Assembly: GCA_047495785.1 (NCBI GenBank)
Contig: JBLDXI010000009.1
Span: 3,286,001-3,350,000 of the forward strand
Reading direction: 5' to 3'
DNA length: 64,000 bases
Source: Lepidodermella squamata
Lineage: Eukaryota > Animalia > Gastrotricha
Part shown: positions 15,582 through 56,980 of the stretch, one piece after another
Layout: each line of letters starts with the position of its first letter
Numbering within the stretch: position 1 is the stretch's first letter
Made by a program: the position numbers and the translations under genes
Notes under the pieces: generated by a model
What the model was told of the DNA's origin: nothing
The model's input: only the letters and a program-made list of their open reading frames with translations
Database searches by the model: none

Positions 15582-18500
15582 TTAGGTTTTTGGAGCAGCA
15601 GCTGCTTCGGTTGTAGTCGGGTTCGGGTCAGGTTTAGGCCGTTGTCGCCCGCCATGCTGCCCATCCGCAGACGCTTCGTGGGCGGATTTCGCTATCAGCG
15701 ACCTGTCGGCGGATTTGCGCGCCGACGGCGGGTAAAGGCCGTAGTAGGACGGGTAGCAGGTGTCGCGGTCGATCGGCTGATGCGTGGCGTCGTAGTTGAG
15801 CACAAACTGGCGGCGCATTTCGACGCGCTCGCGCGTTGGTATGGCGCTAACCTTGCGTTCAATCGATTTCGAAGCTGCACTTTTTCTAGAATAAATAATG
15901 GGAAAAAATTATCGACCGCAAAAATCACATATTTTATGCAGCCTAATTTTTTTGGATAAGCGGCGAAAACGAAATAAAAATGGTTTCCAGCATAGGATTT
16001 ATGCAAATCTTCCAAAATTATCTTCCAAAATTAGGTCAATTTTTCTAAAATTGAAAGTTAGCTCAAACCTTTTGTAGATCCACACGACCGTTCCAGTCAC
16101 GCCACCTATGATGACAATTGCGATCCCAGCTCCGAATAATGCTGCTCCCCATACCGGGAATCCGTTATCAAAGTCGAGAAACTGAAATAGAAAATCATTA
16201 GTAAATCGCGATGTTGATTATTCATCTAAATTTATGAGCCCCCTTAATCGAGTTTTTCTGTAAAAAATCCCTTATTTTAAAAGTAAATAAATTACAGCTG
16301 GGGTCGTTCGGATTGTTGCAGTAATTGGATCAGCTCTATTTGTTGACGTGGCTTGATTCGAGTCAACCACAGCCGCACTCCCGCCAGTCGAACTCGCCGC
16401 GACCTTCGAAACAGATTTCGGCGTGTAACTCGCGTAAGGATCAACCTCTTGGAAAGTTGACGACCATCCAGTAACAAGCGATGGGTCTGTCATCATAGTA
16501 GATAAAGCTGCCTGGTCAACGGCCCCATCACTCGCTGATCTTCTTTTCCGGCGCGATTTTGCAACTCCAGCCGCGCAGCATTGACTCGTCCGATCGCTCT
16601 TAGCCCGGACGAACCACGTGAACACCGAGCCATTGCTGAATTTATTCAGAAAATCTACACCAGTTTCGTTGTTGAAACAGTCCGCGGTAGCGGCGAAAGA
16701 CCCGCTAGCAGTTGTTGGCCAAGTTTTTCCGTCGCAACATTTTTCTTCGTAGAATTTTTTGTCAGACAAACATCTCGAGCTGAGAGCGTCAGCAACTTGG
16801 TCCTTTAGTGAACTTTCACAGGTGTCCTCGAAAATTTCAATTGTTAGGACATTGGACGCAATTTGAACTTGAACTGAGGTTGGAGCCAAAGCGCTGTCAA
16901 CTGAAACGAAAAATTAAATTTTATTCAGAATTCAAGCAAAATTGATTTTTTAGAAAGTTTTATTGCTTTATTATTCAGTCCAATTATTATGCCGAATCTC
17001 GAAAAATTACCTGGGCATGGGGATTGAGCTTTGCATGGAATTTGGATGGTTGAATTCCCCTCACACGTTGCATTCGATGAGCCCAATTTATCGCAGAATC
17101 GCGTTACAGTTCGAACGCCATTATCGCCACAAGTAACGCTGCATTCGCTAGTCGAGTTGACCTTCCAGCCATAACAATTACCAGCTTCATCCTGTTGGTA
17201 ACCATCGGGGCAAAGGCAGGTCTGATAGTCGCCAATAGTTGCGCATTTCGCGAGATGGCCGCACATACACAATGCCCTTCTGTCGCCGGTCGATTTTGAC
17301 GTTCCCGCTGAGCTGGTTACATCTACGTTGAAGCAAGTCGAAGCGACGAAAGGATTTTCGAGGTGCTCGAGGCACTTGCCGCAAAATGACCCAAATTCGC
17401 ATGATGATTGAATCGGCGAAGTTGCGCGGCCCTGATTTCTTGCATTTTTAGTCGTCGCAACAACGTTCGATCGACATGTTTGACCACGAGCGATCGGGGA
17501 CGAGCTTTTAGGACCTAATTAAATTAAATAAATTAATTGGTTTCTATTCAATTAATAATAAAAAATTCATTAAATGATGTACCAAATTTTTAAAAATTTG
17601 TGAAATTTCCTTGAATTTTGAGATTTTTTTGCAAAAATTGATTTATTGACTCACTTTGGACGCATTTTTCGCGGTAAACTATTTCATCCGATTTCCAAGA
17701 ATAGTCGAGAAATTTCTCGAGCTGCTGATTTCCAGGGCAATCGCAAATATTTTTGCTGTTGCAGTAATTAGTGTGGCAATCACTCGCAGTTTTGCAGCTT
17801 CCACCGCGCACTAAAAATTTGGGAAAATAAAAAAAAATATTCCAGGCTAAAAATAATAATTTACCAATTTTCTTGGCACTTGTAACGTTCGATCTACAGT
17901 TTGTTGTATAATCTGTTAGAAATATATTTCATTTATATCGCCATAAAAATTCTGTCAATCCTTACTTTCAGGACGGCAATAGCCCGATTTGCAGGAAGGA
18001 ATTTCAAGCGCAGAAGGAAGAGCTATACAGATGTATCCAGATTCGCAATCAGCATTCCCGTTGGACAAGTCACATAGTACCAATCCATTTCGCTCGCTTG
18101 ATTTCTGCTGCTTCTTCCCGACATTTTCTTGCGCTTTCGCCTGACCAGCCAAGAAGGTATCACTCAAAAATTCATCGCTAGGCATTTTGCAGAGATTTGG
18201 AGCTTTCGTAACTCGAGGAGCATCAGTCGCCCGGCCTGGAACGCCACTGCCTTTGGTTGTATCGATAAGTTGATAAGCCACAACTCCGCTGCTAATTTTG
18301 ACTTGATAAGCCCCGGTTTTGTTTTTGAACACCCCGGTCAAGGTCTCGCTTAGGTAAAACTGGTCTTGACCGGCTTTGAGATCAGACCCATCCCATTTCG
18401 AGTTCAACTGGAGGTTTCCACAGTTGACCATCCTTAAGATAATGAATTTATTGAAGCTAAAAATTCTAAAAATTCAAATTACTAACCCCGATGTAAATTC

Positions 18501-19541
18501 GCCAGTGTAGAGGGAGTATTTCTCCTGATCTTGATTCCATTTAAACCAGAATGTGCCATCAAAGTAGATTTCAGCATTCGATGAGTCATCATCCTGCAGC
18601 CAGCATTTAACAGATTTATCGGATACAACTTGGTGGAAGAAGTAGGAGAATAGGCTTCGTCTCGATTTCGAAATTTTGCCCGACTGATCCGTGGCCAGAT
18701 TGTAGTAGACACCATTCTCGTAATAATACGATTTTACAGAATTTTTCAAATTCTCAAGGGTCGATTTAGGGTTCCAGCAAAAGAAAGATCCGGTAGTAGC
18801 TTCTCGAGAGCCTTTCAGCCTTGCCAAATACCAGCCGTAATTTTCGAAAAATTTCCCACTTTCTTCCACGACTTGCCACGATGCTTGGGTCAAATCGAAT
18901 TTTTGAAGCACAGCTTCATTTAACCAATAAGATTCGCCGAAAATATTGAACATGAAACTGCCATAACAAGGCAGCTGAAGGGCCAAATTTGAACTTCGAA
19001 AAGGTTGATAATCAGCCTCGCCACGGTTGGCTACACATGAGGAAACTTGAGTAGTAGCCCCGTTCCAACAATAACTGGTCTTCGAGTCGGAAAACACGAC
19101 CCCTGAACATTGCGACGACTTGCAGGTCGGGTTTTTATTGTCGTTTTTATCGTCGTCCGCCTTTTTAGTGGCCTCAGCCCTCCGAGTAGTTTCTACAGTT
19201 GTTGTGATTGAAGTTTTGGTCCGAGAATCGTCGCTATTTTCGCTTCCTTTGCCATTGTTGCCTTCATTTTTGTCGCTGGAATCCTGCTTGGCTTTTTGGG
19301 TGGTTGCTTCTTTTTTCGACTCGTCTCGCCCGTTGTTTTTGTTCGAGTCGGATTTTCCATCGGATTTTTTATCGTCTTTTGCATCGTCGTTAACTGCTGT
19401 TGTTATCGCGACTTTAGCTGTTGTAGTCTTCGATGAGTCTATCTTAATGACATCTCGGAATTTCCGATCATCGATATTGATTTCTAGGGCTGAAATCGAA
19501 GCGACGAAAACGACGAGAAGAGCTAGCTGGACGTGGGTCAT
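15582..19541 (-). CDS. R1: type I surface protein (signal, D/K/N low-complexity linker, one degenerate aromatic-rich repeat, Cys modules, EGF, TSP1, SEA-like domain with furin site, TM, tail); multi-exon
   Basis: MTHVQLALLVVFVASISA at 19541; EGF-TSP1 CLCPDGYQQDEAGNCYGW..CSVTCG; SRRKRR; TM exon FPVWGAALFGAGIAIVIIGGVTGTVVWIYKR splices in frame to KSAASK..MRRQFVLNYD (stop 15582). Confidence 0.85.
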
Positions 19542-20015: not shown

Positions 20016-23000
20016 TTAATTTTCGAGTAGAAGGTTCATTTGTTGATTGCGCATCTGTGAAGCTGCCGTGACCACGACAGCGGCTCTTGGGCCGTTCGAG
20101 GTCGCTAAGCTAGGCTGGACGATCGGATGATTTCCACCAGCGGTTTGGCGCTTCATTTTACTGAGACTTCCCTGCATCCGGCTGGTTGTAAGATGCTGGT
20201 GGTGATGGCTGTACATGCCCTGATTGGTAGGGTAGCCTGGCATGACGGCGTGAGGACTCGGGTTCGACTTTCTCGGCTCATTCATCAGTTTCGCCTCACG
20301 TTCAGCTTTCCTCTTACTAAAAATTATAAAATCAAAATTAGTGAAATAAATCAAGATAAAAGGCAAGATTTACTTGGCTATAAGATAAGCCGCGAGGATT
20401 CCCAATGCAATGACAAGCACAAAAACCCCAACTCCAACACCAATCACCCATAACGGAATCATGCCCTGGGCACCAGCGGCCGAAACTCCCGGGTCATAAA
20501 TTGGCGTTGTAGTAGTCGTCACAGTTGGCAGCGTGATCGCGACAATCGGTTGAACGTTCGGATCCACATTTCGAAAAGCAGTTACAATCTTGTCCAACCT
20601 ATCACGAAAATTGCTAAATTTTCTATATGGCTGATGGCTGATAGAAATTTACGCGTCAGGCTGAGAAATCGCGGCTGCCAGTGTAGCCTGGTCGAAGGTT
20701 CCATCGGAACTTGCCCTTTTCCGGCGCTTCGCAGTTTTCGAATTCGTGCAGCATGAACTTCCATAATTCGCTCGAGTCGTCATGTAAAAGCTGAACATGG
20801 TGCCATTCGTGAATTTGCTGTAAAATTTAACACCACTAGCTGGTATGCAGTTGACATCCTGGGTACGATTCGCCCAGGTATCAGCGTTCGGCCAGCTTCG
20901 ACCCGGGCAGCATTGGGCTTCGTAGAAACTTTTCGAAGCCACGCAGTTTTGAGTTAGTGCCGAAGCAACTGATGTCTTCAGATCATCCTCAAGCGAATTT
21001 TCGAATACATCAACTGTCAGAACTTTCGAGCTCAACCTCAAGAAAACAGCGCTAGGGACTATTGATGGATCAATCGGACAGGGCAAGTTTGTCGGAGAGC
21101 ATGGCTGGTAGGAAGTGGCACCACCGGGGCAGACAGCTTTAGACCCAGGTGCTTTGTCGCAAATTCGAGTGACAGTTTTGCGCCCATTTCCGCACGTCAC
21201 GCTGCAATCGCTAGTTGCTGTAGCGTTCCATCCAAAGCAATCTAGACCGTTCTCTTCAAGGTCATAACCAGCTGGGCACAAGCAAACAGGGGTATCTTCG
21301 TTTATCATTGAACAAGTAGCCATGTAGCCGCATTTGAAGCCTTTCGGACAACTGTAGAGCCGTGAAACATCGACCAGGTTCAAAGCTGTAAGAAAAGCGA
21401 CATTTTCAAATTATCGAAAATGGGCGGAGCTTACGCGTGCACGTTGCGTTCATAAGCGGGCTGTTCCAGACTTCAGGGCACTTCGCGCAGGTCATTCCAA
21501 AGCCGCAATAAAATCGTGGCATGTCAGCCCACATGTCACATTTGTCGCCCAATCCACCAACTGTAGCATTATTCGCTGTAAAATTTCGAAGATTCAGGTT
21601 TATGATTTCACGAAAAGAATCGCGCTTACGTATGCATCTTTCCTTGTAATTGTATTGCGCAGATAGCCAATCGTACTCGATATATCGATATAGCTTTGTG
21701 CAAGGCGAGCATGTGCAGTTGTTGTTGATACAGATTCCGGTCATACAATCCGAGTTGTAGTTGCAAAACTCGCCGTATTCCTGTGGCTCCATCATCGGCG
21801 CTGGTGTAGTTGTGGCCAAAGTCGTTGAAGCAGTCGAGACAGTAGTTCGAGAGGTTGTTGTTGTTGTGGCCGCAGCTTGGGTTACTCTCACAGTGCAAAG
21901 CTGGCTGGCCACAGGAACGCAGTAACCCATTGAGCAGTAGTCACTCGGTAGCAACAGCTGCTTCGAAAACCGGTCACAGACGTAGCCGAACCCGCATGTA
22001 TTCGGGCCTTTCGGGTTGCAAACTGTTCGGTCATTTCGGTACAAATCCATTTGGTCCCGCGTCGAAGCGCAAGATGCTCCTGGAAACACAGTCGCGCCAA
22101 GGCAATTCGGTAGCAACTTGCGGTAGATTATCACCCCGTTGCGTACAGAAGCCCACCATATTCCGCTAACGTTCCGATATAACGAAATACCCGTACCATT
22201 ATCAGCTTGATAGAAACCTCCAGTCGCCAAGGGGTCGTCGCCAATCATGTTATCCAAGTTCACATTAGTTTGGGCAAGTTTTCGATTGGGTGTTTCTGTG
22301 TAGACGCTGCCGTTGAAAAATCGGTATACTGTTGCATTTCCAGATGATCGATTGGTCCATCTCATATTCGACAGAAATTTCGCGCACTCGTGCATTCTAA
22401 AAAATCAGGGAAATGTAATCTTTGGACAAAGTGTTAAACTTTCATACTTCGGGGTGAAGTCTCCAGTGTAAGTAATGAAGTTTCCGTTCGTATAGATAAG
22501 CCATTGAAAACCGTTGAACCACAATTCCATAATAACTTTGTTTACTGCATCGGTGAACCAACAGCAAACCGTACGCTGGCACTCAGGTTCTCGCTGGTCG
22601 ATTAGAAAATAGCTCTTCGTGTAGTACGAATCTCTTGGCTGTCTCAATTCGACAAACCCGATTGAATTAGCAACAGAATCGTACAGGCCGGATCTGAAGC
22701 CAAAAACTGCTGGCGGGTTGTCGGTAGTAGTGCAGTAAAAGGACCCATCGCCCTCGTTAGGTCTGACCCTGGCCAGGTACCAGCTGAATGTCATGCTGTT
22801 GTTAGTAGCTAGCACGAACCCACCAGGTACAGCTCGGTAAATGGAACTACCGCTAAGCCAGTAGCCTGTCGAACCGATTTTGAACCTGTAATCTCCTGCG
22901 CAAATGCCAGGTAACACGGGGCCAACATACGGCGCAAAAACCTCCAAGTAATCGTCGCAATAAGTCATGAAATTATTCGGCGAGAGGCAAATAATCGATA

Positions 23001-24117
23001 GAGTTGAAGGGTGGTACCATGCTGTTCCTGAACACTGCCTTGAATAGCACGCCCGTGGAGGGTAGTATAGCTGGTTGTCGGCATTATTCTTCGCATTAGC
23101 GATATCAACATCACTCAGTGGTACATTTGGACCTGTTAAATTGTACAGCACTAAGCTGCTATTCTCGAAGTAAACCATTTTCAGTCCAGTCGAGGCAGAA
23201 TAGGTGAAAAGAGATCCTTCAATGCCCAGAAATACGGCGCCAACAGCACCTTTATCCAACGCAGCAGTCGTAAGGACTTGGTTGTATTGATATTCATCAA
23301 GTGATTGTTGTTCGTAGCTCGTCGAAGTTTTATTGACTCTTCTCAAGAAAATCGAGCCATTAAGCGCTGCATATAGCGTGCTTCCAACAGCCCAAGAAAT
23401 GTTGGTCATATACAGCTTGAAACAACGTGATATTCCGTCGTTCGCAGGTCCGGTGTAGAGAGTAAAGGCGTTAGTAGCATCGTCCCATACCATGACTTTC
23501 CGCTCGTAGAACAGAAATTCCCGAACTACAGGCGAAGAATTTTCGCTGTCATAGTAGTAATCGGACATCCAACAACAACCAGATGTTCGACAGCCTCGAA
23601 CACTGCTGGTGTTTGCAAATTGAATCACTTGATTTTGGGGAAGTCGTTGCGGAACTCTCATTATGAAGCCATCTCCATCTGTTGCTACGTCGTAGTAGCT
23701 ACCGTTGTAGTAGAATGTTCTAAGTTCTGAGTCGACGAGGCTCGATGAGTAAACCCAACCAGCTCCATCGCCAGGTTTCAACCTGGCAAGATACCAGGGG
23801 ACAGTTGTATTCAAACTCCAAGATGTGCCATACAGCTTGTAACTGTAGTCGAGAATTTTGAACGAGAAGTCGCCGTGTGTCGGGACTTCAGGCGCGAACT
23901 GTGATTTGTATGGCAGCCAGACTAACGTTTCATTTTCGCAAACGAAAAGACGCGTGTCATCTTTCAACCAACAAAACAGAGCTTGATCACCGTAGAAAGC
24001 TTTCGCCCAGTAGACGAAGCCTTTACAAGCTATTACATCACAAACATCCTGTCCATTCGACTGCCCAACTATCGCGGAGAGAACAAGAAGCGCTAAGATT
24101 GCAAAACGAATACCCAT
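20016..24117 (-). CDS. R2: type I surface protein with two aromatic-rich repeats, Cys modules, EGF, TSP1, SEA-like/furin, TM, tail
   Basis: ORFs 22405-24117, 21406-22395, 20649-21383, 20370-20597 and 20016-20366 join by short introns; signal MGIRFAILALLVLSAIVG; KRRKR; TM VIGVGVGVFVLVIALGILAAYLIA. Confidence 0.9.
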
Positions 24118-24373: not shown

Positions 24374-27300
24374 CTATTTTTTCTGAGAACGTGAATCTCC
24401 CCAAGCGGTTCCTTCGCGCTTGGGTGGTTTAGGAGTTGTGGACTTTTCTTTCGGTGGCGAAGTTGATTTCTGAGGTTTGATGTCCTCAATTGACGAATTG
24501 TCTGAATCATCTTCTTCATCGCTAACATCCTCCTTTTTGGGGTCTTTGTCATCAGCCACGTCCTCATCGTCTTCTTCCTCGATTTTCGGTTCGTTTATGG
24601 GAGGGTTCTTTATTCTGATTGCGTCCTCGTCACTTTCTTCCTCGTCAGATGATACCTCATTTGCGGGCGGCAACGGGTCGACGGATGGCTTTCTCGATAC
24701 TGCTGAAAGTCTGCTCAGTGGCCTAGTGATCATGGAATCACTCATCGCTCTTGGTCTCATTGATCCAGGTCGCACGCTAGCTTGCCTCGCCGATGGGACA
24801 TTTGGAGGTGTTGAAGTATCGTGCTCAAAAAGTGAGGTTTCTTCCTCCGCCGTCGAGGCGGTCCTCGACAGCGTTAGTTCTTCCGTCATGGTGGAAGTCG
24901 AAAGCGAAAGATGTATATAATCAAACTGATCACCGAAAAAATATTGGTGATACTTCTGCCTAATCATATCGTCGCTTTCCTTGAAGTTGAATCGTACGTC
25001 TCGCTTAAGCTTCGGCAAGGTTTGTACAGTTTCGTCAACAGCATCCGTTGCTTCGAGCACACGAACCATTTCGATTTGAGGAGGAGCTGTCTCAGATTGC
25101 TGAGCTTTTTTCTTCAGGCGAATTATCTCCTTTTCTAGCCTGAGTTTGCTGTAAGAAAATCGAATTACACTAAACAAACGCAATTCTGAATGACTTACTA
25201 GAAGATGAGCATTGCTATAATTAATCCGATTGAAATTACGAGTATTATAACTGTTGCAGCCACTATAACGATCCAGAATGGAAACCCGAGATGGGGCGAG
25301 GCCTTGCCAACAACAGGGTCAATGTAACCGGAAGTCGTCGCAGCGTCGCGACTTACAAACGGAACCACCGTGAAATCGTAGCCCAAATTAGGGTCAATGT
25401 TCCTTAGAGCGCCAAGAATTCTCATTTTCCTAATCACGAAACCATTACTGAAAACACCGTCGAATTTGTGAAATTTTACCCTTCATTTTGCAACAGGAGA
25501 GAGGCCAAGGTCCAAGCTTCAAATATGTCGGAATTAGGCTGACTCGCAGCTCGTTTACGCTTATTCCCACCATTTGAACAACAAGAACCCATAGCATCGG
25601 CTTTCGCAGTTAAAAAGAACGAAAATTCATGCCAATCCGTGAATTTGCTTGTTATATTGATCCCGTTCGAGGTAATACATGAGCCGGTCGGCATCTTAGG
25701 CGGCCAAGTGTTTCCAGGGCAACAAGTCCGCTCGTAAATGTTCTTGGATGCGAAGCACATGTTGGATAGATATTCCGCCAATGATGATTTCAGCTCTGTT
25801 TGAGCCACTGAGTCGAAAAGGTCGGGTGATAGGACCTTGGACTCGAATCTTATCTGCGTTCCGTAGGAGATTGTGTATTTATCAGCTGCGGAAGGAAATA
25901 TTGAGAAACTTCGGCTGAAATGTCATTCAAAGCTTACGCGGGCACTGCCCCTTTTCGCCAGCGCAAGGCTGGTAGATTGTTGATGAACCAGAACACTCAA
26001 CTTTGGACTCCGGGGCCCTGTCGCATGATCTTTTTATTGCTTGAATCCCGTCGCCACAACTTACACTACATTTTCCGTAAGACGTGACATTCCAGCCGTA
26101 ACAATCGACTCCATTTTCCTCCAAAGTATAGCCAGTTGGGCACAGGCAGACTGGGGTGTTCTCATTTATCATGGTACAAGCTGCTAGATAGCCGCATTGA
26201 TAGTCATCGGGGCAGGGGTAGTAGTCCAGAAAGTCATTGAATTTCCAGGCTTAAAATTATTGTTTAAAAACCTTTACGATTGCCCAGTGGGACTTACAGA
26301 CACATGTAGAATTCGCATAGTGCGTGTTGTAGAGTTCGGGACATTTTGAACAAGTCATACCAAGACCACAGTAAGAACTCGGAACATCAGCCCACATGTC
26401 ACAGGTGTCACCCAGTCCGACAACACTGCTATTTGAGGCTGGTCACATTTTGAATAAAGGAATGAAATGCAAACGCCAAATGTTTAACTTACGGATGCAT
26501 CTTTCACCGTAGACATACTTAGCTGTTCGAATATTGTATTCAATGTATGGCAAGTACTTTGTGCAGCTCGAACATGAACAGAGATTGTTAACGCATAAGC
26601 CCGTGAAGCAATCCGTGTCATTGTTACATTCCTCCATGTATTGCTTGAGCCTGTTAGAATTTGGCGAAACGGTTGTTGTTGTAGTGGTGCCTTTCGGAAC
26701 CGGGCAAAATGTTTGATAGACAGGCACGCAGACTCCTCGGGAACAAGTATTTGGCGGCAAGTCAAGCATTTTTGCGAAGTTCTCACAATAGTAACCCGGG
26801 CCACATGTGTTAGGACCGAATGGGTTGCATGCTGTGCGATCATTTCGCGTCAGGTTCATGATGTCTGGGGTAGATGAGCAGTCCATTGATTTTCGACTGA
26901 ACTGCGTCAGAGGAATTTCGTCGCATTGCGGGGGAAGTTTACGATGAAAAAACTGGCCGTCCCGAATTTGCGCCCACCAAATCCCACTGGCATTTCTGTA
27001 CAGCCCGGTGGTTGTGGATGACCCGTTCGGGAAAGGCATGGCGTAGTAGAACCCGCCCGACATTAACGGATCATTTACTGGCAGGTCTTGGATTGCAAAG
27101 TCGATCGGCGTTGAATTAGAAGTGATCGGCTCAGCGAATAGACTCCCACTTCGAAAAGACAGATAGTTTCTCCCAGTTGAATTCCTCCACCTCAAATTCG
27201 ATAGATAACTAGAACATTCGACAATTCTAGACAAAGAAAGGTGTTGTTACAGATATTTAAGCTGGACGGTGAGCTGCTTACCCTTCGTTGAATTCGCCGT

Positions 27301-32883: not shown

Positions 32884-33301
32884 TCAATGTGGGTTCAGCT
32901 CAAGGTGGGTTGGGGAGGAGTATACAACATTTGACTGTTGACCTACAGGCGCAGAAAGGTCAGTTTCTGTATCATGGGATTCAGCGTCGATTTGACGATC
33001 TGAGATTTCAACTTGCAAAGCTATCGGTGCTACTTGGTTACAAGCAACAGATTGAAAGCGTCTGAAAACCATGCATTACAGAGACGAATTAAAAAAACAG
33101 GTCAGTTTACTTTAAACGAGCCCTTCGTCGCAGATAAAGTCGAAATACCACGGCTCCGACTACAACGGCAGATACAAGCGTGCCAGCTACCCATTTTTTG
33201 AGAGGGAAGCCATTGATTATGAAGCTTTCAGTGTGATCATGAGACCAATGTGATGTGGACTGAACTAGTTCATCATTAGATACTGCAGTTACACCTTCCA
33301 T
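32884..33301 (-). CDS. R5: minimal paralogue (short ectodomain, family juxtamembrane motif, TM, tail), two exons
   Basis: ORF 33107-33301 SFIINGFPLKKWVAGTLVSAVVVGAVVFRLYLRRR splices (GTAAAC...TTTTCAG) in frame to RFQSVAC...LELNPH* (32884). The motif matches IIDGAYVKKW of R6 and ITIDGIEVKKW of R8. An upstream exon cannot be excluded. Confidence 0.65.
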
Positions 33302-42916: not shown

Positions 42917-45804
42917 TTAATACTGCGGTTGCAGTCGATTGATATCAGCGGTATAACCGGTGTAAATTTGTTGAGATTTAATTGCGAATGCTGCGTTCGG
43001 GTTTATTCCAGGCAGCGGCATATTCTTTGGCATTGGCGGTACAGGGTACTGATCATTGTATGTTGGCGCTTCAAAAGCTGGGTGATGCATAGCACTGCCA
43101 TGAACCTGCGAGAACTCCAGGCGCCGCCTTGCACTATCGGTCAATCCCTCCCGAGGAATCATCACATTTTGCTGGTGATGATTGATATTGTTGAATCTCG
43201 CGTCAACCTTCGCAAGTTGTTTCTGCCGATAGATACAATAACCAACAATTGCAATGATCGCAATGCAGACGATCGGAAGAGTTATTGCGACAGCGATAAC
43301 CCAGACCTTAACAGCTGTACCGCCAATTATGATGTAGCTTCCATCGTTACTCGATGAAGACGAAACTTTCGTTGTGGCGGCTGTTGCTGCTGCTGCAGTG
43401 GTTGTTGTGGTAGCAGCTGCTGTAGTCGTATCAACAACTGCTACAGCAGAAACGCCTGAAGCGCCGGGATCTGAAACATAAGTCTGATATCATCGCTGTA
43501 AAACATAATCGCATAATATCAACCTGTTGCTTGGATAGCCTGGGTAATTGCTGTTGACCTGATGAAAGATGATTATTAAAATAATGACCTTAATATTCGA
43601 AAATCTTACGCCTGCGATGACGATACTAAAGCTTGGACATCCGACTGCGATAAGGCTGTTGTATCCGTGGCTGCTCGCCTCTTTCGCCCAGTTGTGGAGA
43701 TGTTCCCACACAAGTCATTTGTAACCTTGGGAGTAAGCATCAAACCGAAGCAGAATTTCCCATCGCTTGATTTGTATGGGTTCGAAAAGGTCATGCCAGT
43801 TTCGTCGAGATAGCTCCCTTTCACACTAGCCGACCACGTTTTCCCAGGGCAGCATTTAGTGTAACTATCATTTGTCAAACACTGGGTGTTGATTGCCGTG
43901 GCTAAACTCGACTTGAGAGAGCTCGAGACGCTGGTCGTGAAGATGTCCTCAGTGATAACTTCCGTCAAAAAACAAACATCGACCGAATATTTTTTGATAG
44001 TGTCATTAACTGATTAAAAGTGAAATTGTTATTCATCTATACTATCGAGCAAAGTCAAGAATTACATGGGCAGCGGACACCAGTGTCACAAGTCTCAGCC
44101 GATTTAGACATTGAAGTCGGGCACGTCACCGTTACATTGGTAGGTGCATCGCATTTCTGGGTTAATGCACGAACCCCTCGTCCACCTAAAATGTTTTCAA
44201 GCCGTTAAAATTAAGTTAATTCTGAATTAGGGAACATGTTACAAGTTGCGTTGCAAGCAGGAGACCGAGTTGCATTCCAACCGTAACAGTCCTTGCCATT
44301 CGTGTGGAGAAGGTAGCCATCGGGGCATGCACAGGTCGAAACACTGCCGGAATCATCAGAAACTAAAGTTGCCTGATACCCACACGTGAACGTTGTTGCT
44401 TGGGTTGTGGTGTTCGATGAAGCTCTGGTCGGGAATTTGATTGCTGCAATCAAATAGAGGTTAAATTTGAGGGGAAAATGGATGTATCTAAAAATTACCT
44501 CTGCATACTGCTGGAACCGTAGATATGGTTAAATGTTCGGGGCATTTCATGCATACTGACTTGGAGTCGCAGTATGCATTCAACGACTCACCACAGTACT
44601 CACCACTGGCAACAATCTTCTGATATGTTACTAGAATAGAAATGCTAAAAAAAAGTTTTGAATTCAAGCCGTTGTCCTTACTATTAAGGCATTTCTCTCC
44701 GTAAACAAGCCTTGAAAAGTTACCACTTAATTTCAACTCCCAAGTGGTAGCAACTTGAAGATCCGCTGGACATACGCACATTGTATTAGTGCAGAGGCCT
44801 GTGAAGCAATCTGAATTCTTTGTGCAAGCAACGCCAAACCCTAAAATTATAGCTATAGTATTAGACGAATCAACCTGAGCGAAAGATCTTACGCTTTGTG
44901 GCGGTAGTGATGGTTTGAGCCGCTGTAAAGCGAAATTTGGCTTTTGCTACGTACAGTTCAACCTTAAAAGGCACAACTTACCGGTTAACGCCGAATCGCA
45001 GAGATCTTTTGTGCATTTCATCGATGAAATCAGATAGGGGTCGAATAATTTGACTGATTTGCAATTCGAAGGTGTGGTACTAGCTGTGCTTGCTCCCGAA
45101 TTAGTGGCTTTAGTCTGGGTGGCACTGTTGCTTGCCCCCGAGTTTGCGGCTTCAGTCTGAGCGACATTGGCACTAGCAGTCCGGGAAGTTGTAGCGACGT
45201 TCGAGGCTTGGGTAGCTGCCGCAGCACCTGCTTGAGTAACTTTGGTGGTAGATTGAGAATTCGATGCTGTAGTACCCCCTGCAGTACCCCCTGCGGTACC
45301 TCCTGCGGTAGTCCCTACGGCTGCCGACCCACCAGTCGCTCCAATATTGAGCGAGCCAGCGGATTGGGTAGCACTTTGGGTGACTCCTGCAGAGTTAGAG
45401 CTGGCTTGAACAGAAGATTGTTGGCTGGCCGACTTGGTTGTCGGAGGTCCAGTCTGTGTAGAAGGGGCCGCTGCCGCCGTCGCGGGAGGGGATGTAGCTG
45501 GGGGCGCAGCTGTAGCAGGCGGAGCTCCGGTTGCTGCTGCTGGAGAAGTTGCGGGTGGAGCTGCAGTAGCTGGTGGAGCTGATGCTGTTGCTGCTGGAGA
45601 GGTTGCAGGGGGAGCAGCAGTTCCACCCCCGGAAAGTCTAGTTGTTGATTGAGTAGCGGTTGTTTGTGCTAAGCATTCATAGCTAAGGATCAAAACTTCA
45701 GCAAAACAATAGCGGATTTAGAGTCTCAATACATTAAAATGGCCGTATTTATTACCTAATATCAGCAAAATTGGGCAGCACCTTCCCACAAAGGCTGTTG
45801 GCAT
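42917..45804 (-). CDS. R9: paralogue with Ala/Thr/Pro mucin N-terminus
   Basis: MPTAFVGRCCPILLIL|VLILSYECLA; PPAT repeats; EGF/TSP1; RKRR; YIIIGGTAVKVWVIAVAITLPIVCIAIIAIVGYCIY; stop 42917. Confidence 0.85.
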
Positions 45805-46070: not shown

Positions 46071-48783
46071 TCAGAAGTGCGGCGCATCTGCCGCACCGTA
46101 CCCATAATTCATGTGTTGGTTATAAGGGTCGTTATTAGTATGATTGTAGATCCCGCTATCCAGTGAACCAGGATATGGGCTGTCGTTTGCATGTAAAGAA
46201 AAGTAAGCTGCATACGCGGCCTCTTCCTCAGCCGTCATAGCAGCTGTTCCAGGTTGATGAATCGGCTCGGGCGGGTAATGAGGAATATTTGCATGATTTG
46301 CGTGACTCGCGTGATTCGCGTGAACTATAGGTTGATTGGTCATTTCGTACTGGTTATTGAACAACTGGTTAACCGGGACAACTGATGCTCTCCTTTGTAC
46401 AGTTTCATGCATACGAACTTCGCTGATAGGTGTTGGGGCTACTTGAGGCTTAACTTTAGGAGAAGGTTTCCTTGCCTCTTTTTTAGCGGCTGCTTTCTTG
46501 CCCTGCTTTTTGCACAGATAGACGCCGATTCCGATTGCTAAGCCTGTTATAAGAAGCGGTAAAATAATCCCAACCGCTAACAGCCAGCCTTGAATGCATG
46601 AATCGCCGAGTGTCACCCAGGAAGATGGGCATCCTGTTTGAGACCCACCTGCAGAACTTTCGGAACCCGAGCTTGCAGTGGTATCGGCGTGCGTAACTGA
46701 TGCTGATGTAGTAGCCGTGGTGGTAGTTGTTGCAAGTCCAAAAGAGCTCGAAGAAACCGAAGCTGCGGGATCAGCTTGCTGAACGGCTGAAGTTATCGAT
46801 GAAACACTAAGGAAAACACGTGTTTTGCGTCATAATTCAGCAAAATACAGCAAACTTACACTGAATTTGACTGAACTATGGTCAGCAATGATGATTGATC
46901 GATCGCTACATAGGATGCGGCTCGCTTTTTCCTAGCCTTCGTCGTTGAGTTGCTATCACTGGCGGATGCACAAAGGGCATTGGTAGTGTTAGCTTTCGGG
47001 AGAAGTCCGACACAGAATTTTGAGCCGTCTTTGTAAGGATTGAGAAGCTGAACTTCAGAGGAATAAATAAATGTCCCAGACACGCTTGATGACCACGATT
47101 TCCCGGGGCAACATAATGCGAAGGTGCTGTTCTCAGTACGGCATTTCGTATTCAGAGCATTGGCAATACAAGATTTCATCGGGGTTGAAACAACCTTGTT
47201 GAAAAGTGATACTGTAAGAACTTGCGAGGTGAAGCACAAGTCAACGGCGTATTTTGTTGTTTCAGCATCATCTTAAAAACGGGGGGTCGTAAAATCAATG
47301 CGTTATTGATTTGGAGGGCTCTTACATGGACATCTCCCTTTATCGCAGTCTTGAACTACGACTTTTGCAGAATCTTGGCATGGCCCACCAACAGGATCAC
47401 ATATCTGAGTTACTTGCTGTGTTCCATAACCACCTTTTAAAGGACAATTATTCAGCTTTCATCTCTCAAAAAAATGAACATTTACATGTAACGCTGCAAG
47501 TTCCGAGGCTTGAAGTTTTCCAGGCTATAGCGTAATCAATGCAAAGTTTGATAACTTGCCAATCAAATGTGTCCTTACCGTAACAATCTTTGCCATTCGT
47601 TTGAAGCTGGTAGCCAGCTGGGCATGTGCAAATCGGCATTCCGGCAACGACATTACAGGTAGCCAGGTATCCGCAGGTGCAATTAACTTTGCTGCTAGAC
47701 GAGGAACTTGGGAATTTTATAGCTGGACACAAAAATGATGTCAAGGCTGAGTAAAATCTTTCAGTATGTTACTTTGACAAGTCGCATCGACATCTGTTTT
47801 ACTCCAATATTCGGGGCATTTCATTGAAATTGTTGTTGAGTCACATATTGAAGAAGGTGGGTCGTAGTAGAAGTCCAAACTGCTCTGGCCTACGGAAGCT
47901 ACCTTTGTAGATAAAGCTGGGCATAAAATCGAGGGTAATTTCTATTTAGGTTCAAGCGGAAAAAGCACTTACGAATGCATACTTCATCGTACAAAATGCC
48001 GATTGGATTGCTGGTTTCATCAAACTGCCAAGCTATGACGTATTTCGAGCAAGAGGCGCATGCACAAGAGCCTGATTTGCAATAACCCGTGTAGCAATCA
48101 GAGTCATAGGTACAGTTTTGACCATATCCTAGGGAGAACAAATTCAGGGAAAAATTTTGGGAATTTTGAGGGAGATTACTTTGAGAATTTGTCGAAGTTG
48201 AGTTAGTCGCATTAACAGGGAGGCAAACTCCCATAGTGCATGTCATGGCACTTGCTAAAACTGAGCCATATGCGACAGAAACTGAAGCGCAATATTCCCC
48301 CGAATTGCCACATGAATTATTAGCACCAAGAGTACAAGGCCGAACGCCACTTGCTGTAAAACCTCGATATTTAACAAAATGTCTCTGAATTAGAGTCGCC
48401 TACTCAAATTTGCTGAACTCCAGTATGGGCTTGATGAAGCGTTGCACCGTGCTCGATAGTCATCGGGATCAGGTGCTATAAAGTTCGACGATGTCATAGC
48501 ATATTCGGATAACTCCCTGGTTAGAAGTTCTTACCTGTAGTAGTGACCACTGCAGTCGTTGTTGTTAGAGCAACAGTAGTGTTATCTAAAAAATGTAACA
48601 AAATTGCGGCTGCTTTTGATAAAAGGCTTCAACCAAACCTGATGTAGTAGCGTTTGTCGGATTCTGGCAACATCCTGCATATCTGGTTTACGCAATAGAA
48701 TATCAAAAAAGAAGCAACTAACCGATTTCGATAAGCAATAGTAGCCCGAAGGCTGTGACGAATTCTCTTGTCAAATTACCCAT
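46071..48783 (-). CDS. R10: paralogue with short N-terminus and Tyr-rich tail
   Basis: MGNLTREFVTAFGLLLLIEI; Cys modules; EGF CTCPAGYQLQTNGKDCY; RKKR; TM WLLAVGIILPLLITGLAIGIGVYLC. Confidence 0.85.
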
Positions 48784-49299: not shown

Positions 49300-52200
49300 T
49301 TAGAATCTGTTTCCTTCGGCGTAATAGGCCACGGCTGGGTTGTATGCCACGTCTCTTTGGTAGTACAAGTTATCCCTTCCTACACTTTGAGGAGGCTGGG
49401 GAGCCGGCGCATTCGGCGTTTCGAATAAGTTGGCGTAGTAAGCATCAGCGTACGCTTGTTTCTCCTCTTCAGTCGGCCGATGGTTCTCAAACTGCGGTGA
49501 CAGCTCTCGAGTTGCGAACATACCTGTCGGAGCCACTGTCGCTGAGTATGGCTGGTGAGGCTCCATTCTCGGCGGAAGGTCCAAAGGCACAATGCTCAAA
49601 GGTTGGTAGCTCGGTTGGTGCATGCTCATTTCGGGAGTAGCCTGTGCAACCGCCCCAGGTTGTATTTTTCGTTGGCTGTTCTGCTTAACGCAACACGCGA
49701 CGATCACGCCGACAAGTATAGCTATGAGCAGAACCCCTACGCCAACAGCAACACCCAGGACCCATATCTTCACCCATTTGTTTCCGATTTTAACCCAGGA
49801 GGAATCGTAAGCTTCAACTATGGCTGAAGAATTGGATTGCAGAGTGGTAGATACTGTGGTTGACGTTGTTGAAGTCGTAGTTGTAGCCAAAGACACTGAA
49901 GTCGTGGAAATCGAAGCTGACGGGTCAACTAAAGCGATGGCTGAGTTGATTGATGAAAGCCTAAAAAACGCCTTTAAGCTATAAGACTCAATAAATTGAA
50001 CGTTTTACATGTCCGCAGATTGGGTTAGACTCAAAAGCGTTGTTTGATCAATCGTCGTATAAGTGTCACGCTTTTTCCGCGCCGTTGACGTAGCAGCCTT
50101 ACTGCAAAGATCATTGGATGAGTTGGCCTTAAGCATGAGTCCAAGGCAAAAGGTGATCCCGTCCGTATCAGGGTTCAATAGAGCGACCTCAGACGAGTAA
50201 ATGTAGATTCCCGTGAGATTAGAGGACCTGAAATCAAAATTTAATGGGACGGAACCAAGGTATAATTAGAACTTACCATGTCTTTCCTGGGCAGCATGAT
50301 TTGAAGGTTGACGAATCATTTTTGCACTTTGAATTCATTGTAGTTGATACCCCAGATTTCATCTGATATGCGACCAGTTTGTTGAATAGCGAGACCGTAA
50401 GTATACTCGAGTTGAAACAGAGGTCAACGGCGTACTTAACAGCTTCCGAATCAACTAATAGTAATTAATCGATTAAATATTTCTGTAAATTATGTTAACA
50501 CCCACATGGGCACCTAGCCAGTTGGCAATCTTCAACAGTCCGCCGGGTTTCATTCGAACAAGGGGAGTTAAGGGATGTTGGTGCGTCACACTGTTGAGTT
50601 ATAGATCGAGTTCCCAGACCACAAGTGACGCTACATGACCCCGTAGCAGTCGTATTCCAGCCTATCAAAAAAACCGTTAATGTAGCTGGATAGACCTTAA
50701 AGGACCAACCATAGCAGTCCTTTCCGTTTGCATGAAGTAGATAGCCGGAAGGACATGTGCATATATTCAAGCCTCCAACAACTGCACAGGAAGCAAGATA
50801 TCCACAAGAGCTGCAGTTCGAGCTTGATGACGAAGAGGTTGTGGAAAATTTGATTGCTGCAAGGGAAAGTTTAAATTTGCTCTCATTTCAAGTCAACTTA
50901 AGATTACACTGGCATGTCGCATCGATCGATGTGCTGTTCCAGTATTCTGGGCATTTCATTGGTAGCGATTTAGAGTCACAGCCTGTTACTGGAGGGTCGT
51001 AATGAAACGAATCCGATGTTTGCCCAGAGGATGCGAGCGTGGTATTTTTTGCTTAAATGAAAGCCAATAATGCCAGCTCAAGAATCAGTTTCATACTTAC
51101 GAATACAGCTCTCCGAATAAGATAATTCAAATGCATACGAAGAAGTATTGAAAACGTATTTCCAGGCTATCGAGAATTGAGCGCAGGAAGCGCAAGTGCA
51201 AACCGAGTTACAGTAACCGGTATAGCAATCTTCATCTTTGCTGCAATTTGCGCCGAATCCTTAAGGAAAATTAAAACATTGAGCCTGCATATCCACAGTG
51301 CGATGAAAAGATTTACTCAGCAGGGTTTTTGTCGAAGCCGAAGAAATGTTTTTAGCTGTCAAATTGGGAAAATTATTAAAAAAACAGATCGCAAATAGGT
51401 CCTTACTTTGAACACAAATTCCCATTTTGCAACTGAGAGCTTTGGATAAAATCGAGCTGAAAGCAGTTGACATCCCTACGCAAGTTTCGGTTGAACTGCT
51501 ACAGGAGTTGTTAGCAGACAAAGTGCAAGGACGATAGCCAGAAGCTGACGAGGGAGCACTCATAAAATACATTGCATTTCAGTAAAATTGCGAAACCAAC
51601 TTCTATTGACTGATGTGAAGGTCGGTGTTTTCGTTGCGACACATTTCGATAGATAGCGCTCAGTGGTAGATGTCTTCGACGTGGTAGTTGCAGACGTGGC
51701 GGATGACTGACCAGAACTTGCAGCTAGCGTTGTAGCTGTCGTAGTAGTCGTGGTGGTCGTTGTAGACGAAGATGATGCCGAGGATCCCGTTGAAGACTGC
51801 GAGGCCGTGGTCTGGCCCGATGAAGAAGCGGCCGACGTTGCAGGTGTTGACGATGTCCCGCTGTAGAAAAACAACGACGCTGTAGAAAAATATTGCCAGA
51901 TGAAAATTAAGCTACGATTGAGCTTTGAATGGCGATTTTCAAAGAAATTAAAATTTATATTAAAACCTGTTGAGAGACCGTTGCGTCACAAGCTGAGTAG
52001 TTGTTGAAGCTGTGGTGGTTCCAGTGCTTCCGGTGGAGCTTCCGGCGCTTCCAGTGGTTCCAGTTGTTCCAGTGGAGCTTCCGGTAGGTGAAGCTGTAGA
52101 AGCGATTGGTGAAGTTGAGATGGCTGAACTCGACGAAGTGGCAGTCTGAGTTACAGCTGAAGATGTCACAACCGACGAACTTGGAGGTGAAGTTGAGGCC

Positions 52201-53714
52201 AGAAAGGTTGTCACTGGAGAAGCTGCAGCGGATGACGTCGTTGCAGATCCTGTCGTCATTAGGGAAGTCGTCACAATCGTAGTCGTTGGTGAGCTAGAAC
52301 CTGGTTGGGTCGTAACTGACGACGTCGAGGCTGGAAGGGATGTAGTCCCAGTTGAAGAAGGCGCAGTACCAGGAAGCGTTGTAGTAGGCGATGATGTGGC
52401 TGAAGCCGTGGGTGTCGCAGTAGTAGCGGCTAGTGAAGTCGTCGCTACAGTTGCAGAAGAAGTAGTGACTAGTAAGGTTGTAGCCGCGGTTGTAGGGGAA
52501 GTTGTCCCAGGGGACGAACTTGCAGCCGCAGTAGTTGTAGGTAACGTCGTAACTGACGTAGCTGACATGGTTGTTGCTACTGTTGCTGACAAAGTCGTCA
52601 CTGCGAGGCTAGTGGTCACAGCTGAAGTGCCTGTACTTGGTAGCGTTGTAGCTGTTGTAGTTGGAGATGTAACTGTTGAGCTTGTTGTCACAGTCGAAGG
52701 CAAGGTCGTCACAATAGTCGCGCCAGGGGTTGTGGTAGTATCAGTCGCAGATGTTGTAGTCAAAGGTAACGTCGCAATCACAGTTGTGGGCGATGTTGAA
52801 GCTGGTATGGTTGTCGTCACTGTTACTGGTGAACTCGTAGCAAGTGCGGTGGTAGTCGCAGGCGCATTCGAAGTAGTAGTCGGACTCGTCGCTGCTGTTG
52901 CTGCTTGACTTGTAGTAGGTTGGGTAGTGACTACAGTTGTAGCAACTATAGTAGTAGCTACAGTTGTTGGAGAAGGCGTGTCAGCAGCTAAGGCGGTAGT
53001 TGAAGTAGTTGGTGGTGATGTGGGGGATGTAGCTGTGGTTGTAGTTGAAGTAGTTGCTGGTGATGTGGGGGATGTAGCTGGGGTTGTAGTTGAAGTAGTT
53101 GCTGGTGACGTGGGGGATGTAGCTGGGGTTGTAGTTGAAGTTGTTGCTGGTGACGTGGGGGATGTAGCTGGGGTTGTAGTTGAAGTAGTTGCTGGTGATG
53201 TGGGGGATGTACCTGGGGTTGTAGTTGAAGTAGTTGCTGGTGATGTGGGGGATGTACCTGGGGTTGTAGTTGAAGTTGTTGCTGGTGACGTGGGGGATGT
53301 AGCTGGGGTTGTAGTTGAAGTAGTTGCTGGTGATGTGGGGGATGTAGATGGTGAGGTTGTAGGCGGTACAGTTGTCGTCACTGTTACTGGAGAAGTCGTG
53401 GCAGGCGTTGTTGTAGTTCCAGGCGCATTCGACGTAGTGGTCGGAGAACTGGTCGCTACTGCTGTTGTTGGACTTGTTGTAGGGATAGTAGGGACAGTAA
53501 CAGATGTGGTAGTCGTAGCAAGAGTTGTAGTCGTTGTAGGTGGCGCAGTCGTCGTTGTAGTTACCTTTGTAGTGGTCGAAGTAGTTGCTGGTGGTGGCGG
53601 CGGCTGTCCTGTAAATAAAGAAAGAGATCAAAAGCTTAACAAGTGCTTGTTGTAACAACCTCGAATAGAGCAGATTATGAATACCAATGCAATAGCGAGA
53701 TTTAGGGCGGTCAT
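49300..53714 (-). CDS. R11: transmembrane mucin paralogue with a 15-aa tandem repeat
   Basis: MTALNLAIALVFIICSIR|GQPPPPPATT; long T/S/P domain; EGF/TSP1 50495-50770; RKKR; WVKIGNKWVKIWVLGVAVGVGVLLIAILVGVIVACC. Confidence 0.85.
52998..53347 (-). repeat. Coding 45-bp tandem repeat (about 7-8 copies, TTSTTTP[A/G]TSPTSPA) in R11
   Basis: The unit GCTGGTGAYGTGGGGGATGTASCTGGGGTTGTAGTTGAAGTWGTT repeats with few changes. Confidence 0.9.
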
Positions 53715-54048: not shown

Positions 54049-56980
54049 TCATGTATCATACGCCGCATAACCATGGTACGGATTGGTCGTCGTCGGGTTG
54101 GCGCCTTGATAGCCTGCTGCATTTTGCGGTGGGTAGTACAAGTCGCTTCTTACATTCCCGTTTTGATGACTGAATGAGTCATACTGCCCGTGGTCGTGGG
54201 CGCCCTGCATAGATGCATAGTATGCCATGGCAGCTGCATCCTCGTCATAAGGTGGATCTTGATGCTGGTTAGGATAGTGCTGTTCGCTGGAGGGGTTACC
54301 ATATCCAGTGATCATTTCAGGCGATACCCTTCGATGCCCTGCAGCGCTAAACCTCGGAGAATCCTGGGGCTTTTTGTCTTTTTTCTTACAGCAGCAAATC
54401 GCAACAACGATGCCGATAATGAGTAACACTAATCCACCTGCAGCACCGCCTATGATTCCGAGATGAAGACACATAGAGCCGATCAAGATGAAGCCTGAAT
54501 CACAGCTTAGGGTTGTCGCTTCACTCTTACTACTGGCTGCTGTAGTTCCGCCAGCGCCACTGCCTGAAGTCGTGGTAGTAGTCGTTGTCGTTGTTGTAGT
54601 CGTGGTTGTTGCCTGGCTGAAAGATGACGCTGATACACTAGCGGCTGGATCCGCCTGTTGAACGGCTGAAGTTATTGCAGCGACGCTATACAGACGAACC
54701 GCAGATCTACGAAGATAGAATTTTGTCACCGAAACTCACATGTCGGATAATGAAGCGATTTGCAACATCGTTGATTGATCGAAGGTTATGAAACTTGCAT
54801 CACGCTTCCTTCTCCGCTTCTAAAGAAGCAATGTTACCATTTCATGAATACTTTCATTCACAAATTTACCCCTTCGGGAGGAGCGGTGGTAGGCTGAGGG
54901 GTCGTAGTTGGAGCAGCAGTTGGGGCGGCAGTTGTTGCTGTCACTGCAGCAGTAGTTGGGGCATCAGTTATTGTCGTTACTCCCGCAGTAGTAGGGGCGC
55001 CAGTTATTGTCGTCACAATTGTCGTAGTCGACGCAGTAGTTGCAGGAGCCGCTGTTGTCGTCGTAACCACCGCTGCGGTTGTCGTGGCTACCGTTGTAGC
55101 TGTAGCTGTCGTGGTTTTTGTCGTAGTTACTGATGATGTAGTGGTCGCTGCTGTAGTTGTGATAGATGCCGCTCCAGCGCATAAGGAATTGCTAGCATTA
55201 GCTTTCAGCATTATCCCTACGCAGAACTTGCTGCCATTAGTATCCGGATTCAGAAGCACAACCTCGCTAGCTTGCATGTAAGTCCCACTAAGCGTGGCAC
55301 TCCATTCTTTGTTAGGACAGCATGATGAGAACAGAGTTTTATCACTCTTGCATTTCGAGTTCATCGCAGTGGCAATTTTCGTCTGCATCGACGCAGCGAC
55401 TACTTTCTGAAACAGCTCTACAGTGAGCACGGTAGAGTCGAAGCACAGATCAACGGCGCTTTTCGCAGCATCAGCATCAACTTTTAACACGCGATGAATC
55501 ATCAAGATTTTAGTTGTTCGAATGTCTGGAAACTTACAAGGACATCTGCCCATGTAACATGATTCCGAGGTTGTTTTTAAGGAGTCGAGGCATGGGGACG
55601 ATAATGTCGATGGAGCATCGCAAGTTTGAGTTACAGTTCGTGTTCCATATCCACCTTAAAATTCTCAACATTATCCTTTCAAGACTTCGGTCTATACACT
55701 TACATGTTACATTGCAAGAGCCTGTTGTAGTTGTTTTCCAGCCTTGAATGGTGAAGTGAATGAAAGCCAATAAGGATCAAGATTAGTCAACTTACCATAA
55801 CAGTCTTTCAGGTTACTGTGAAGGGCGTACCCTGACGGGCAAGTGCAAATAGGAACTTTATTGATAGAAACGCATGTTGCCGCGTTGCCACAGCTGCACC
55901 CGGTGGTGTTTGCCAAAGTAAAAGCTAAATAATACGGATGGTGAACACTTTTTGATATGACTTCCGATCAAAGACTTACGCTGGCAAGTCGCCGTGATAT
56001 CAGCATTGTCCCAATACTCGGGACATTTCAAGGAAGTAGTCACCGTGTCGCACAAACTCGAGGGTGGGTCGTAGTGGAAGTCTGCGGAAGCTTGTCCAGA
56101 ACCAGGTCTCTTCGACGTTTTCGCTGAAATCCTTTATTTGAAGCCTTCTTAATGCACGGAGGGTTGATATAGCTTACGAATACACATTTCATCATAGGCT
56201 AAAGCCAAAGGGGTAACGGTCTCGTCCACGTAGACATAAGACGCGAATTGCGAACAAGACGAACAGGCGCAGGTACCGCCAGAGCAATACCCAGTCATGC
56301 AGTCATCTTCCGACTTGCATGGTCTTCCGTATCCTAAAGAGAGAACGTTTATGAAGGCACTTTTGAATTGAGTCCTACTTCTTGGTGCAGCTTCAAGAGC
56401 TGCAGTTACTGTCGTAGCCGCGGCTGTCGTAGTTACTGCAGCGGCTGTAGTAGTTGCCGCAGCTGTTGTTGTAGTAGCTGATGATGTAGTCGAAGCCGTG
56501 GTTGTGACAACTATTTGAAATCATTATTTCACCTTCAAGGAATTTGCTGGTCAATTTACAAACCAGGTAAGCAGACTCCCATTTTACACGGAGACGGTAG
56601 GTTGGTTAGGATGGATCCGTATGCGGTAGATATCGGGGCACAATACTCACCACTACTGCACGTGCCATTGTTCGTTAAGTTGCAAGGTCTAACCCCAGAA
56701 TCTACGATACAAGCCGTTAATTCCTTCGCTGAAAGTAAGGTGATGCAATGACTGACCCTTATTTTTGTACGGATAGACAGGTGTGTCCGATACGTTGCAT
56801 CTTGTGGTATCTAGCGGGGTCGTAGTAGTCAGTGCAGCCGTTGTGGTTGGCTCTGCAGTCTGACAATCTGACAGTTCAACTTTAAACGAAACAATCATCC
56901 AAAGCTCCGCAAATCATACCGATGAAGCTAGACTGGAACCCCAACAAAACGCAAAGCGTAAGCCAGTAGATAGATATCAT
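54049..56980 (-). CDS. R12: paralogue with a Thr-rich insert inside the SEA-like loop and a Tyr-rich tail
   Basis: MISIYWLTLCVLLGFQSSFI; Cys modules; EGF/TSP1; KRRRKR; TM IIGGAAGGLVLLIIGIVVAICCC. Confidence 0.85.

Follow-up and report, generated by a model that had tools for sequence, protein, structure and literature searches.

A SEA-like domain of the ferredoxin type lies near the membrane in the mucins MUC1/MUC16, in KIAA1549 and dystroglycan, in the MAD domains of PCDH15 and CDH23, in the collectrin domain of ACE2 and in the HD region of Notch, and serine/threonine (S/T)-rich stalks recur among these proteins. In KIAA1549 and Notch, such domains are known to be processed internally by furin (PMC13570299), and a SEA-like domain that has a folded neighbor can act as a force-gated proteolytic switch (PMC6586460). 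Corals have mucin-type type-I proteins that contain EGF and TSP1 modules, namely the mucin-like protein B3EWY9 and MUC4-like proteins (PMC4890752, PMC3748352). The Alr proteins of Hydractinia, in turn, are built of Ig and Fn3 domains, are highly polymorphic, and often carry ITAMs (immunoreceptor tyrosine-based activation motifs; PMC9546547). Here we describe a tandem array of genes in a 64,000-nt stretch of the genome of the gastrotrich Lepidodermella squamata (contig JBLDXI010000009.1, positions 3,286,001 to 3,350,000; hereafter the window) that invites comparison with all of these systems. The general design, a SEA-cleaved mucin or adhesion receptor, is already known; judged by sequence, the family encoded by the array would work like the known SEA-type mucins and adhesion receptors yet differs from them at the sequence level.

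Six-frame translation showed recurring cysteine motifs from about 57.0 to 15.6 kb, belonging to minus-strand paralogues arranged head-to-tail from 56980 to 15582. Gene models were built with a splice-aware script and curated manually, splicing being predicted throughout, and were numbered G1 to G11 from low to high coordinate. There were 12 open-frame models with GT-AG introns. The 90 introns had a median length of 53 nt, and 85 of them measured 45–62 nt; the last introns of G1 (3′ half, 15582–17654) are AT-rich and longer, at 110–183 nt. Sixty-five of the 90 are in phase 1, and cysteine modules B and C each occupy an exon of their own in nearly all genes; both features would fit assembly by exon shuffling. 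The first-pass annotation of this DNA had counted 12 head-to-tail paralogues, presumably with the small G4b as one of them. The tandem array stands, but G4b, the twelfth model, showed no BLAST similarity to the paralogues, so that the count is 11; G4b is possibly a relic. Stop-to-start gaps between G11 and G1 are 187–516 nt, apart from one of 1091 nt at an inserted element, and joint transcription of the genes is possible. GC content in the window is 38–50%.

Ten genes (G1–G6 and G8–G11) share the full ordered chassis that had been proposed for ten of the copies: cysteine module B, module C (with a CPE motif), EGF, TSP1, a CC-P-G domain and a polybasic site, followed by an S/T-rich stalk, a single transmembrane (TM) segment and a tail of 103–261 aa. 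The translations show a further cysteine module upstream of module B that also belongs to the chassis. The polybasic site occupies the same position in all ten, as R-x-K/R-R in nine and as KRKR in G3. Pairwise chassis identity is 28–56%, far above chance; this divergence among copies, together with collinearity in another species, rules out an artefact of assembly or amplification. In Pfam searches TSP_1 exceeded the cut-off in G1 and G2, and EGF-type families stayed below it. For cysteine modules B and C no match passed the threshold (the EB module reached E 0.008 at best; LEAP-2 and a Dickkopf subdomain also appeared), so that both are left without a family. G7 lacks the chassis and is kin to G5, G6 and G8 around the TM segment (E 2e-7 to 6e-6). 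We found no named family with this order of cysteine modules, EGF, TSP1, SEA-like domain and TM segment in literature and library searches, in agreement with the first-pass annotation, and on their predicted sequences G1–G11 constitute an undescribed family of membrane-anchored surface proteins.

The genes differ in the head that follows the signal peptide, either an S/T-rich stalk of ~50–630 aa or one to two aromatic, beta-rich units. An aromatic repeat in one or two copies had been noticed earlier in the first four genes, and it proved to be a unit of ~310 aa, single in G1 (where it is shortened) and G4 and double in G2 and G3. Mucins of very different length had been assigned to copies seven to twelve of the original count. 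Long S/T-rich regions are indeed present in G6, G7, G8 and G10 and in none of G1–G5, but the S/T-rich N-termini of G9 and G11 extend over just ~50–60 aa. Serine and threonine make up 42–48% of the ectodomain in G6, G7 and G10, and each gene has 3–22 NxS/T sites. The mucin region of G10 contains a tandem repeat of 45 nt in 7.9 copies (52996–53351), and the main Thr-rich segment of G11 is an insert of ~100 aa within the SEA loop, just before RRKR. Tails are 60–261 aa long and, judged from the translations, of low complexity and without repeats. An element of 849 bp in the last exon of G6 provides the stop codon of that gene; the reading frame past the element would add 28 aa.

The CC-P-G domain is modeled as a SEA-like ferredoxin fold. 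Its AlphaFold model (predicted local distance difference test, pLDDT, 83) has a strand, a long helix, two strands, a loop and a helix, the last strand being absent. The best structural match was the ACE2 neck/collectrin domain (Z 8.3, root-mean-square deviation 2.5, 83 residues aligned), followed by PCDH15 MAD12 (Z 6.9), CELSR1 (6.8), CDH23 (6.2) and the nuclear-pore chain Nup54 (6.1), after which scores fell to 3.8; all of these leading matches are of the SEA type. These matches agree with the earlier suggestion of single-pass surface proteins on a SEA-like base with a furin site. The domain itself gave no match in a Pfam search for SEA or in a search of PDB sequences. Unlike the SEA-type receptors, it has no sequence similarity to known SEA domains but has conserved extra cysteines; the autoproteolysis motif of canonical SEA mucins (G/SVVV), searched for as GS[VITL][VIL], is absent from every chassis in the window. 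Cadherin parts are likewise missing, and neither the LNR repeats nor the ankyrin-repeat tail of Notch was seen in the translations. What the window genes do share with MUC1/MUC16 is a long S/T-rich, potentially O-glycosylated region (66% S+T in G6, 59% in G10; also G7 and G8).

In all ten genes the SEA-like domain is the last folded domain ahead of the TM segment, with the S/T-rich stalk between. Its polybasic site is found in the loop that connects the third strand to the second helix. This loop tolerates the insert of G11 and so is exposed, and by analogy with KIAA1549 and Notch we infer furin-type cleavage there.

Homologues of the base exist outside gastrotrichs. An exhaustive search of 1.84 billion proteins with a hidden Markov model profile of the SEA-like domain gave 13 matches, mostly on ENA metagenome contigs of related animals with small introns; the rest came from the bivalve Mya arenaria, from the flatworm Macrostomum lignano and from L006 (Logan protein P0011). 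The Mya protein WAR25021.1, annotated as ‘MLP-like protein’, has the layout EGF-EGF-TSP1-SEA-polybasic site-TM, and L006, which is intronless, has the same layout (hmmsearch E 3.8e-8 and 4.5e-8, respectively). HHalign supported the Mya SEA-like domain (probability 97%, E 5e-11), with its cysteines aligned. Both proteins thus share with the window genes the EGF-TSP1-SEA-like order, the cysteine pattern, the polybasic site with its position and the TM segment. They differ in that Mya carries a long series of EGF modules of the calcium-binding type and a WxxW-type TSP1, whereas in the window genes the single EGF is a non-calcium one, WxxW is absent, and there are extra cysteine modules and different heads. 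Two SCP/CAP-domain proteins of M. lignano, A0A1I8HYU9 and A0A1I8FKH7 (E 1e-4 and 3e-4), have the CC-P SEA-like domain behind EGF-like modules, one of them with a polybasic site in the corresponding place; unlike the window genes, they have a CAP head, no TSP1 and, in the deposited models, no TM segment. When the Mya SEA region was used as query, nothing but that region itself was retrieved, and a scan with a SEA pattern of the mucin clade returned no match.

The first-pass annotation had called the array lineage-specific. The bivalve homologues of the base and the flatworm homologues of its SEA part show instead that the base is older than the gastrotrich lineage. In the Mya locus (L007:1–11366), calcium-binding EGF exons continue from an upstream NIDO-containing model into WAR25021.1, with an extra EGF exon between the models at 6741–6935; the annotation has probably split a single NIDO-EGF-TSP1-SEA-TM gene into two. 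By analogy with the layout of MUC4-like proteins, NIDO-AMOP-vWD-EGF (PMC4890752), the EGF-TSP1-SEA-TM base may derive from the C-terminal part of such a protein. Pfam searches found no NIDO, AMOP or vWD in the exons scanned from the window and from a related species, NIDO occurring only in the upstream model of Mya; in the coral proteins, whose family name WAR25021.1 carries, the TSP1 repeats are N-terminal.

Metagenome contigs of that related species allowed the history of the array to be followed. Its SBSPON protein is 83–84% identical to the one encoded in the window, and one locus (L008) retains part of the array with its order unchanged: first a member of the G5/G6/G8 group, next a gene with one aromatic unit (L008b), then one with two units (L008c), and finally SBSPON. 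G4 and L008b are one-to-one orthologues (tree support 100/99). Their heads are 38% identical, their chassis modules 45–69% (about 50% overall), the regions past the furin site 33% and the tails ~30%, and both proteins end in AAHGY. In G2, G3 and L008c the first aromatic units formed one clade and the second units another, which indicates that the head with two units is older than the separation of the species. A tree with the window genes as a monophyletic group was rejected (approximately unbiased test, p-AU 3.5e-53), and on this evidence the duplications are older than the split from the relative. Recent expansion is ruled out by the saturation of synonymous sites (pS 0.78–0.88 in the six pairs measured). 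On a chassis tree from which two long Macrostomum rows were excluded, the aromatic class and the mucin or short class each required one change (mean of shuffled data ~6; none of 500 shuffles was as low). The heads, then, have not been swapped among genes. In the relative, the G5/G6/G8-group gene (L008:2460–2660) may be without a polybasic site, its splicing being uncertain, and just upstream of the array lies a divergently oriented gene whose product has a signal peptide and a stalk rich in T/E/S (L008:1–416, minus strand).

Further loci of the relative (L001 and L005) also carry family members, and another sample yielded a fragment with a 63% match to the G9–G11 group. One member (L001:11394–17028) of ~1790 aa has three aromatic units in a single exon of ~4 kb; the units group together, pointing to an independent internal triplication. 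Alleles were compared among consensus assemblies from a few metagenome samples of the relative, several of which share a BioSample name and probably come from one site. They differ by at most 1.4% of residues; replacement/silent counts were 5/4, 9/19 and 9/24 (three comparisons over 1216 codons), 11/21 (801 codons) and 3/8 (945 codons), so that replacement changes were fewer than silent ones in four of five comparisons. As a gene has about three replacement sites per silent site, these counts indicate purifying selection.

The aromatic unit has no recognizable family or fold, as far as searches and modeling can tell. Phe, Trp and Tyr make up 16–18% of the heads of G2–G4, and Cys, Gly and Trp positions are conserved. 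A model built from six sequences (pLDDT 64) was mostly beta, with about five four-stranded meanders. Its best match among solved structures had a VIA Z-score of 4.1, and the best in the ESM Atlas a TM-score of 0.35; searches of Pfam and of PDB sequences gave no match, and feature searches of the ESM Atlas gave none that was usable. Weak Foldseek matches were mostly to beta-propellers, fucose lectins among them (E 3e-3 to 3e-2, TM-scores of just 0.10–0.15), and no internal repeat was detectable (HHalign probability below 9% for all blade pairs). A word-index search with the two-unit exon gave no match and also missed open reading frames (ORFs) of 804 and 513 aa in the relative, both of them called as genes within the same collection, so that its blank is a weak sign of absence. 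Single-query pattern scans of JGI metagenomes, prokaryotic genomes and viral contigs, which reach close relatives only, were likewise blank. A tentative and on balance doubtful reading is that the unit is a new ligand-binding fold, probably glycan-binding and restricted to this animal group, carried in one to three copies by a SEA-like switch, undescribed, disulfide-bearing and spiralian-wide, that is primed by furin and opened by force. If so, a single cleavable base would serve the genome, at more than one locus, as a common platform under heads of various kinds.

Our best explanation, which we hold to be slightly better than an even bet, is that the array encodes furin-cleaved, sheddable, membrane-tethered glycoproteins of mucin or adhesion type, made of two chains and having fixed, gene-specific roles. 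In their mode of action such type-I proteins would resemble membrane-tethered mucins and adhesion receptors of SEA type, that is, of the MUC1/MUC16, KIAA1549, dystroglycan and PCDH15 class. A furin-type convertase would cut the exposed loop in the Golgi, and the SEA fold would hold the halves together after the cut because its last helix and strand sit on the membrane side; tension or a second protease could then release the ectodomain. The mucin clade (G5–G11) may form glycocalyx or cuticle-precursor coats of differing thickness, and the aromatic clade (G1–G4) may tether the cell to matrix, glycan or a partner protein, each gene keeping a conserved role. The base would be inherited from a spiralian-wide module, on which the aromatic head would have arisen once in the family tree. 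A general role in adhesion or the glycocalyx was among the possibilities listed at first pass, and the data favor it. Several observations weigh against this explanation. The family evolves fast by the standard of SBSPON, as the G4 orthologues show, and fast evolution is common in recognition proteins. Copy numbers differ in the relative, which with its additional loci means that birth and death of genes occurs. The structural Z-scores of 7–8 are moderate at best, for a model without its last strand. Finally, the Tyr-rich tails and conserved C-terminal ends suggest signaling or scaffolding beyond a passive coat.

Three other explanations draw on the same evidence. The proteins might be receptors sensing microbes or glycans, with a lectin-like, possibly beta-propeller aromatic unit that binds the surfaces of food or pathogens, so that pulling opens the SEA switch and the Tyr-rich tails signal. 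The abundance of aromatic residues, the modeled meanders, the propeller and fucose-lectin matches, the variable number of units (one to three) and the somewhat faster divergence of the head than of the chassis fit this idea, but the structural scores are very low and no convincing internal repeat was found; moreover, the unit is absent from seven of the 11 genes, and no ITAM was present in 18 tails. We consider this reading unlikely. Decidedly unlikely, in our judgment, is a set of cell-type-specific developmental or neuronal receptors acting as Notch-like proteolytic switches, with furin priming, shedding upon pulling by a ligand and a signal from the tail. Here the structured N-terminal neighbor of the SEA-like domain (TSP1) reproduces the arrangement that acts as a switch in other proteins (PMC6586460), and the one-to-one orthology and shared AAHGY end point the same way; on the other side, the low-complexity tails retain little identity between orthologues and contain no folded domain, one has been cut by a transposon, and long mucin heads are more in keeping with a coat than with binding of a specific ligand.

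The first-pass annotation had proposed a recognition or adhesion code of variable heads on a constant chassis, with the Hydractinia Alr cluster as one example of such loci. In an Alr-like version of this code the proteins would be polymorphic, homophilic self markers in allorecognition or gamete recognition. The array does resemble Alr in that it groups diverged single-pass paralogues whose tails differ greatly, as well as in its fast divergence. The heads, however, are not shuffled and the duplications are old, and the tails yielded, besides the absence of ITAMs, a single ITIM-like hexamer (in G5). No Ig or Fn3 domain was matched by Pfam in the exons scanned, although Alr Ig domains are atypical and Pfam alone could miss them. 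The gastrotrich host is probably solitary and non-fusing. Its family, Chaetonotidae, is described as parthenogenic and as having an ornamented cuticle (PMC4563153), and the near-identical sampled alleles of the relative contrast with tens to hundreds of alleles at Alr1 and Alr2 (PMC9546547). A code of this type is thus very improbable for the array. More broadly, diverged single-pass paralogues may lie in a cluster without forming an identity code; here, orthology across species and low allelic variation argue against one.

Membrane-tethered glycoproteins of mucin or adhesion type would make G1–G11 concrete candidates for gastrotrich surface-coat or adhesion proteins, of which our literature searches found no molecular description. 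The analysis also defines an unnamed family of SEA-like domains, present in a flatworm and a bivalve as well as in a gastrotrich, together with a ~310-aa domain without known relatives or fold. Coordinates of the genes, example domains and neighboring features are collected in Table 1.

Table 1. Features of the window (positions in nt from its first letter; array genes with predicted splicing)
Feature	Position	Strand	Description
G1	15582..19541	-	1083 aa; signal peptide, charged linker, one shortened aromatic unit, full chassis, RRKR (16553), stalk, TM, 103-aa tail
G2	20016..24117	-	1278 aa; two aromatic units, full chassis, RRKR (20726), TM, tail
SEA-like (ferredoxin-fold) domain to post-furin helix, example from G2	20652..21080	-	AlphaFold pLDDT 83
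G3	24374..28983	-	1414 aa; two aromatic units, chassis, KRKR (25562), TM, 261-aa acidic tail
G4	29171..32647	-	1015 aa; one aromatic unit, chassis, RKKR (29951), TM, M/N/Q/P/Y-rich tail
Aromatic unit, ~310 aa, example from G4	31496..32500	-	mostly beta in model; without family or fold match
G4b	32884..33301	-	122-aa ORF in two exons; weak TM, without signal peptide; doubtful member
G5	33513..36009	-	655 aa; chassis almost directly behind signal peptide, RAKR (34527), TM, tail with RRxS motifs
849-bp non-autonomous element	36255..37103		hAT-like; terminal inverted repeats, 8-bp target-site duplication
G6	37101..41007	-	1141 aa; ~540-aa S/T mucin region (66% S+T), chassis, RRKR (37821), TM; tail shortened by the 849-bp inverted-repeat element
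G7	41394..42566	-	373 aa; signal peptide, mucin region, TM, tail; without chassis
G8	42917..45804	-	797 aa; ~180-aa A/S/T/P/G-rich region, chassis, RKRR (43686), TM, tail
G9	46071..48783	-	710 aa; short T-rich N-terminus, chassis, RKKR (46933), TM, Tyr-rich tail
G10	49300..53714	-	1265 aa; ~630-aa mucin region (59% S+T), chassis, RKKR (50079), TM, Tyr-rich tail
G11	54049..56980	-	784 aa; short N-terminus, chassis, RRKR, TM, Tyr-rich tail
Ankyrin-repeat protein	3885..4748	+	
Small TM protein	5268..5684	+	Cys-rich C-terminus; no family match
SBSPON homologue	11751..14081	+	Somatomedin B and SBSPON_C
TGF-beta-like cluster	57414..62553	-	five diverged tandem ORFs; Pfam TGF_beta E 4e-4 to 0.08, below cut-off
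Microsatellite	60859..61005		perfect 5-nt repeat, 29 copies
MADF-domain protein	63377..63982	-	

The TGF-beta-like ORFs lie directly upstream of the array, and the microsatellite falls within their cluster. On the other flank, SBSPON is convergent with the array in the window and co-oriented with it in two loci of the relative (L004 and L008), which indicates a local inversion between the two species.

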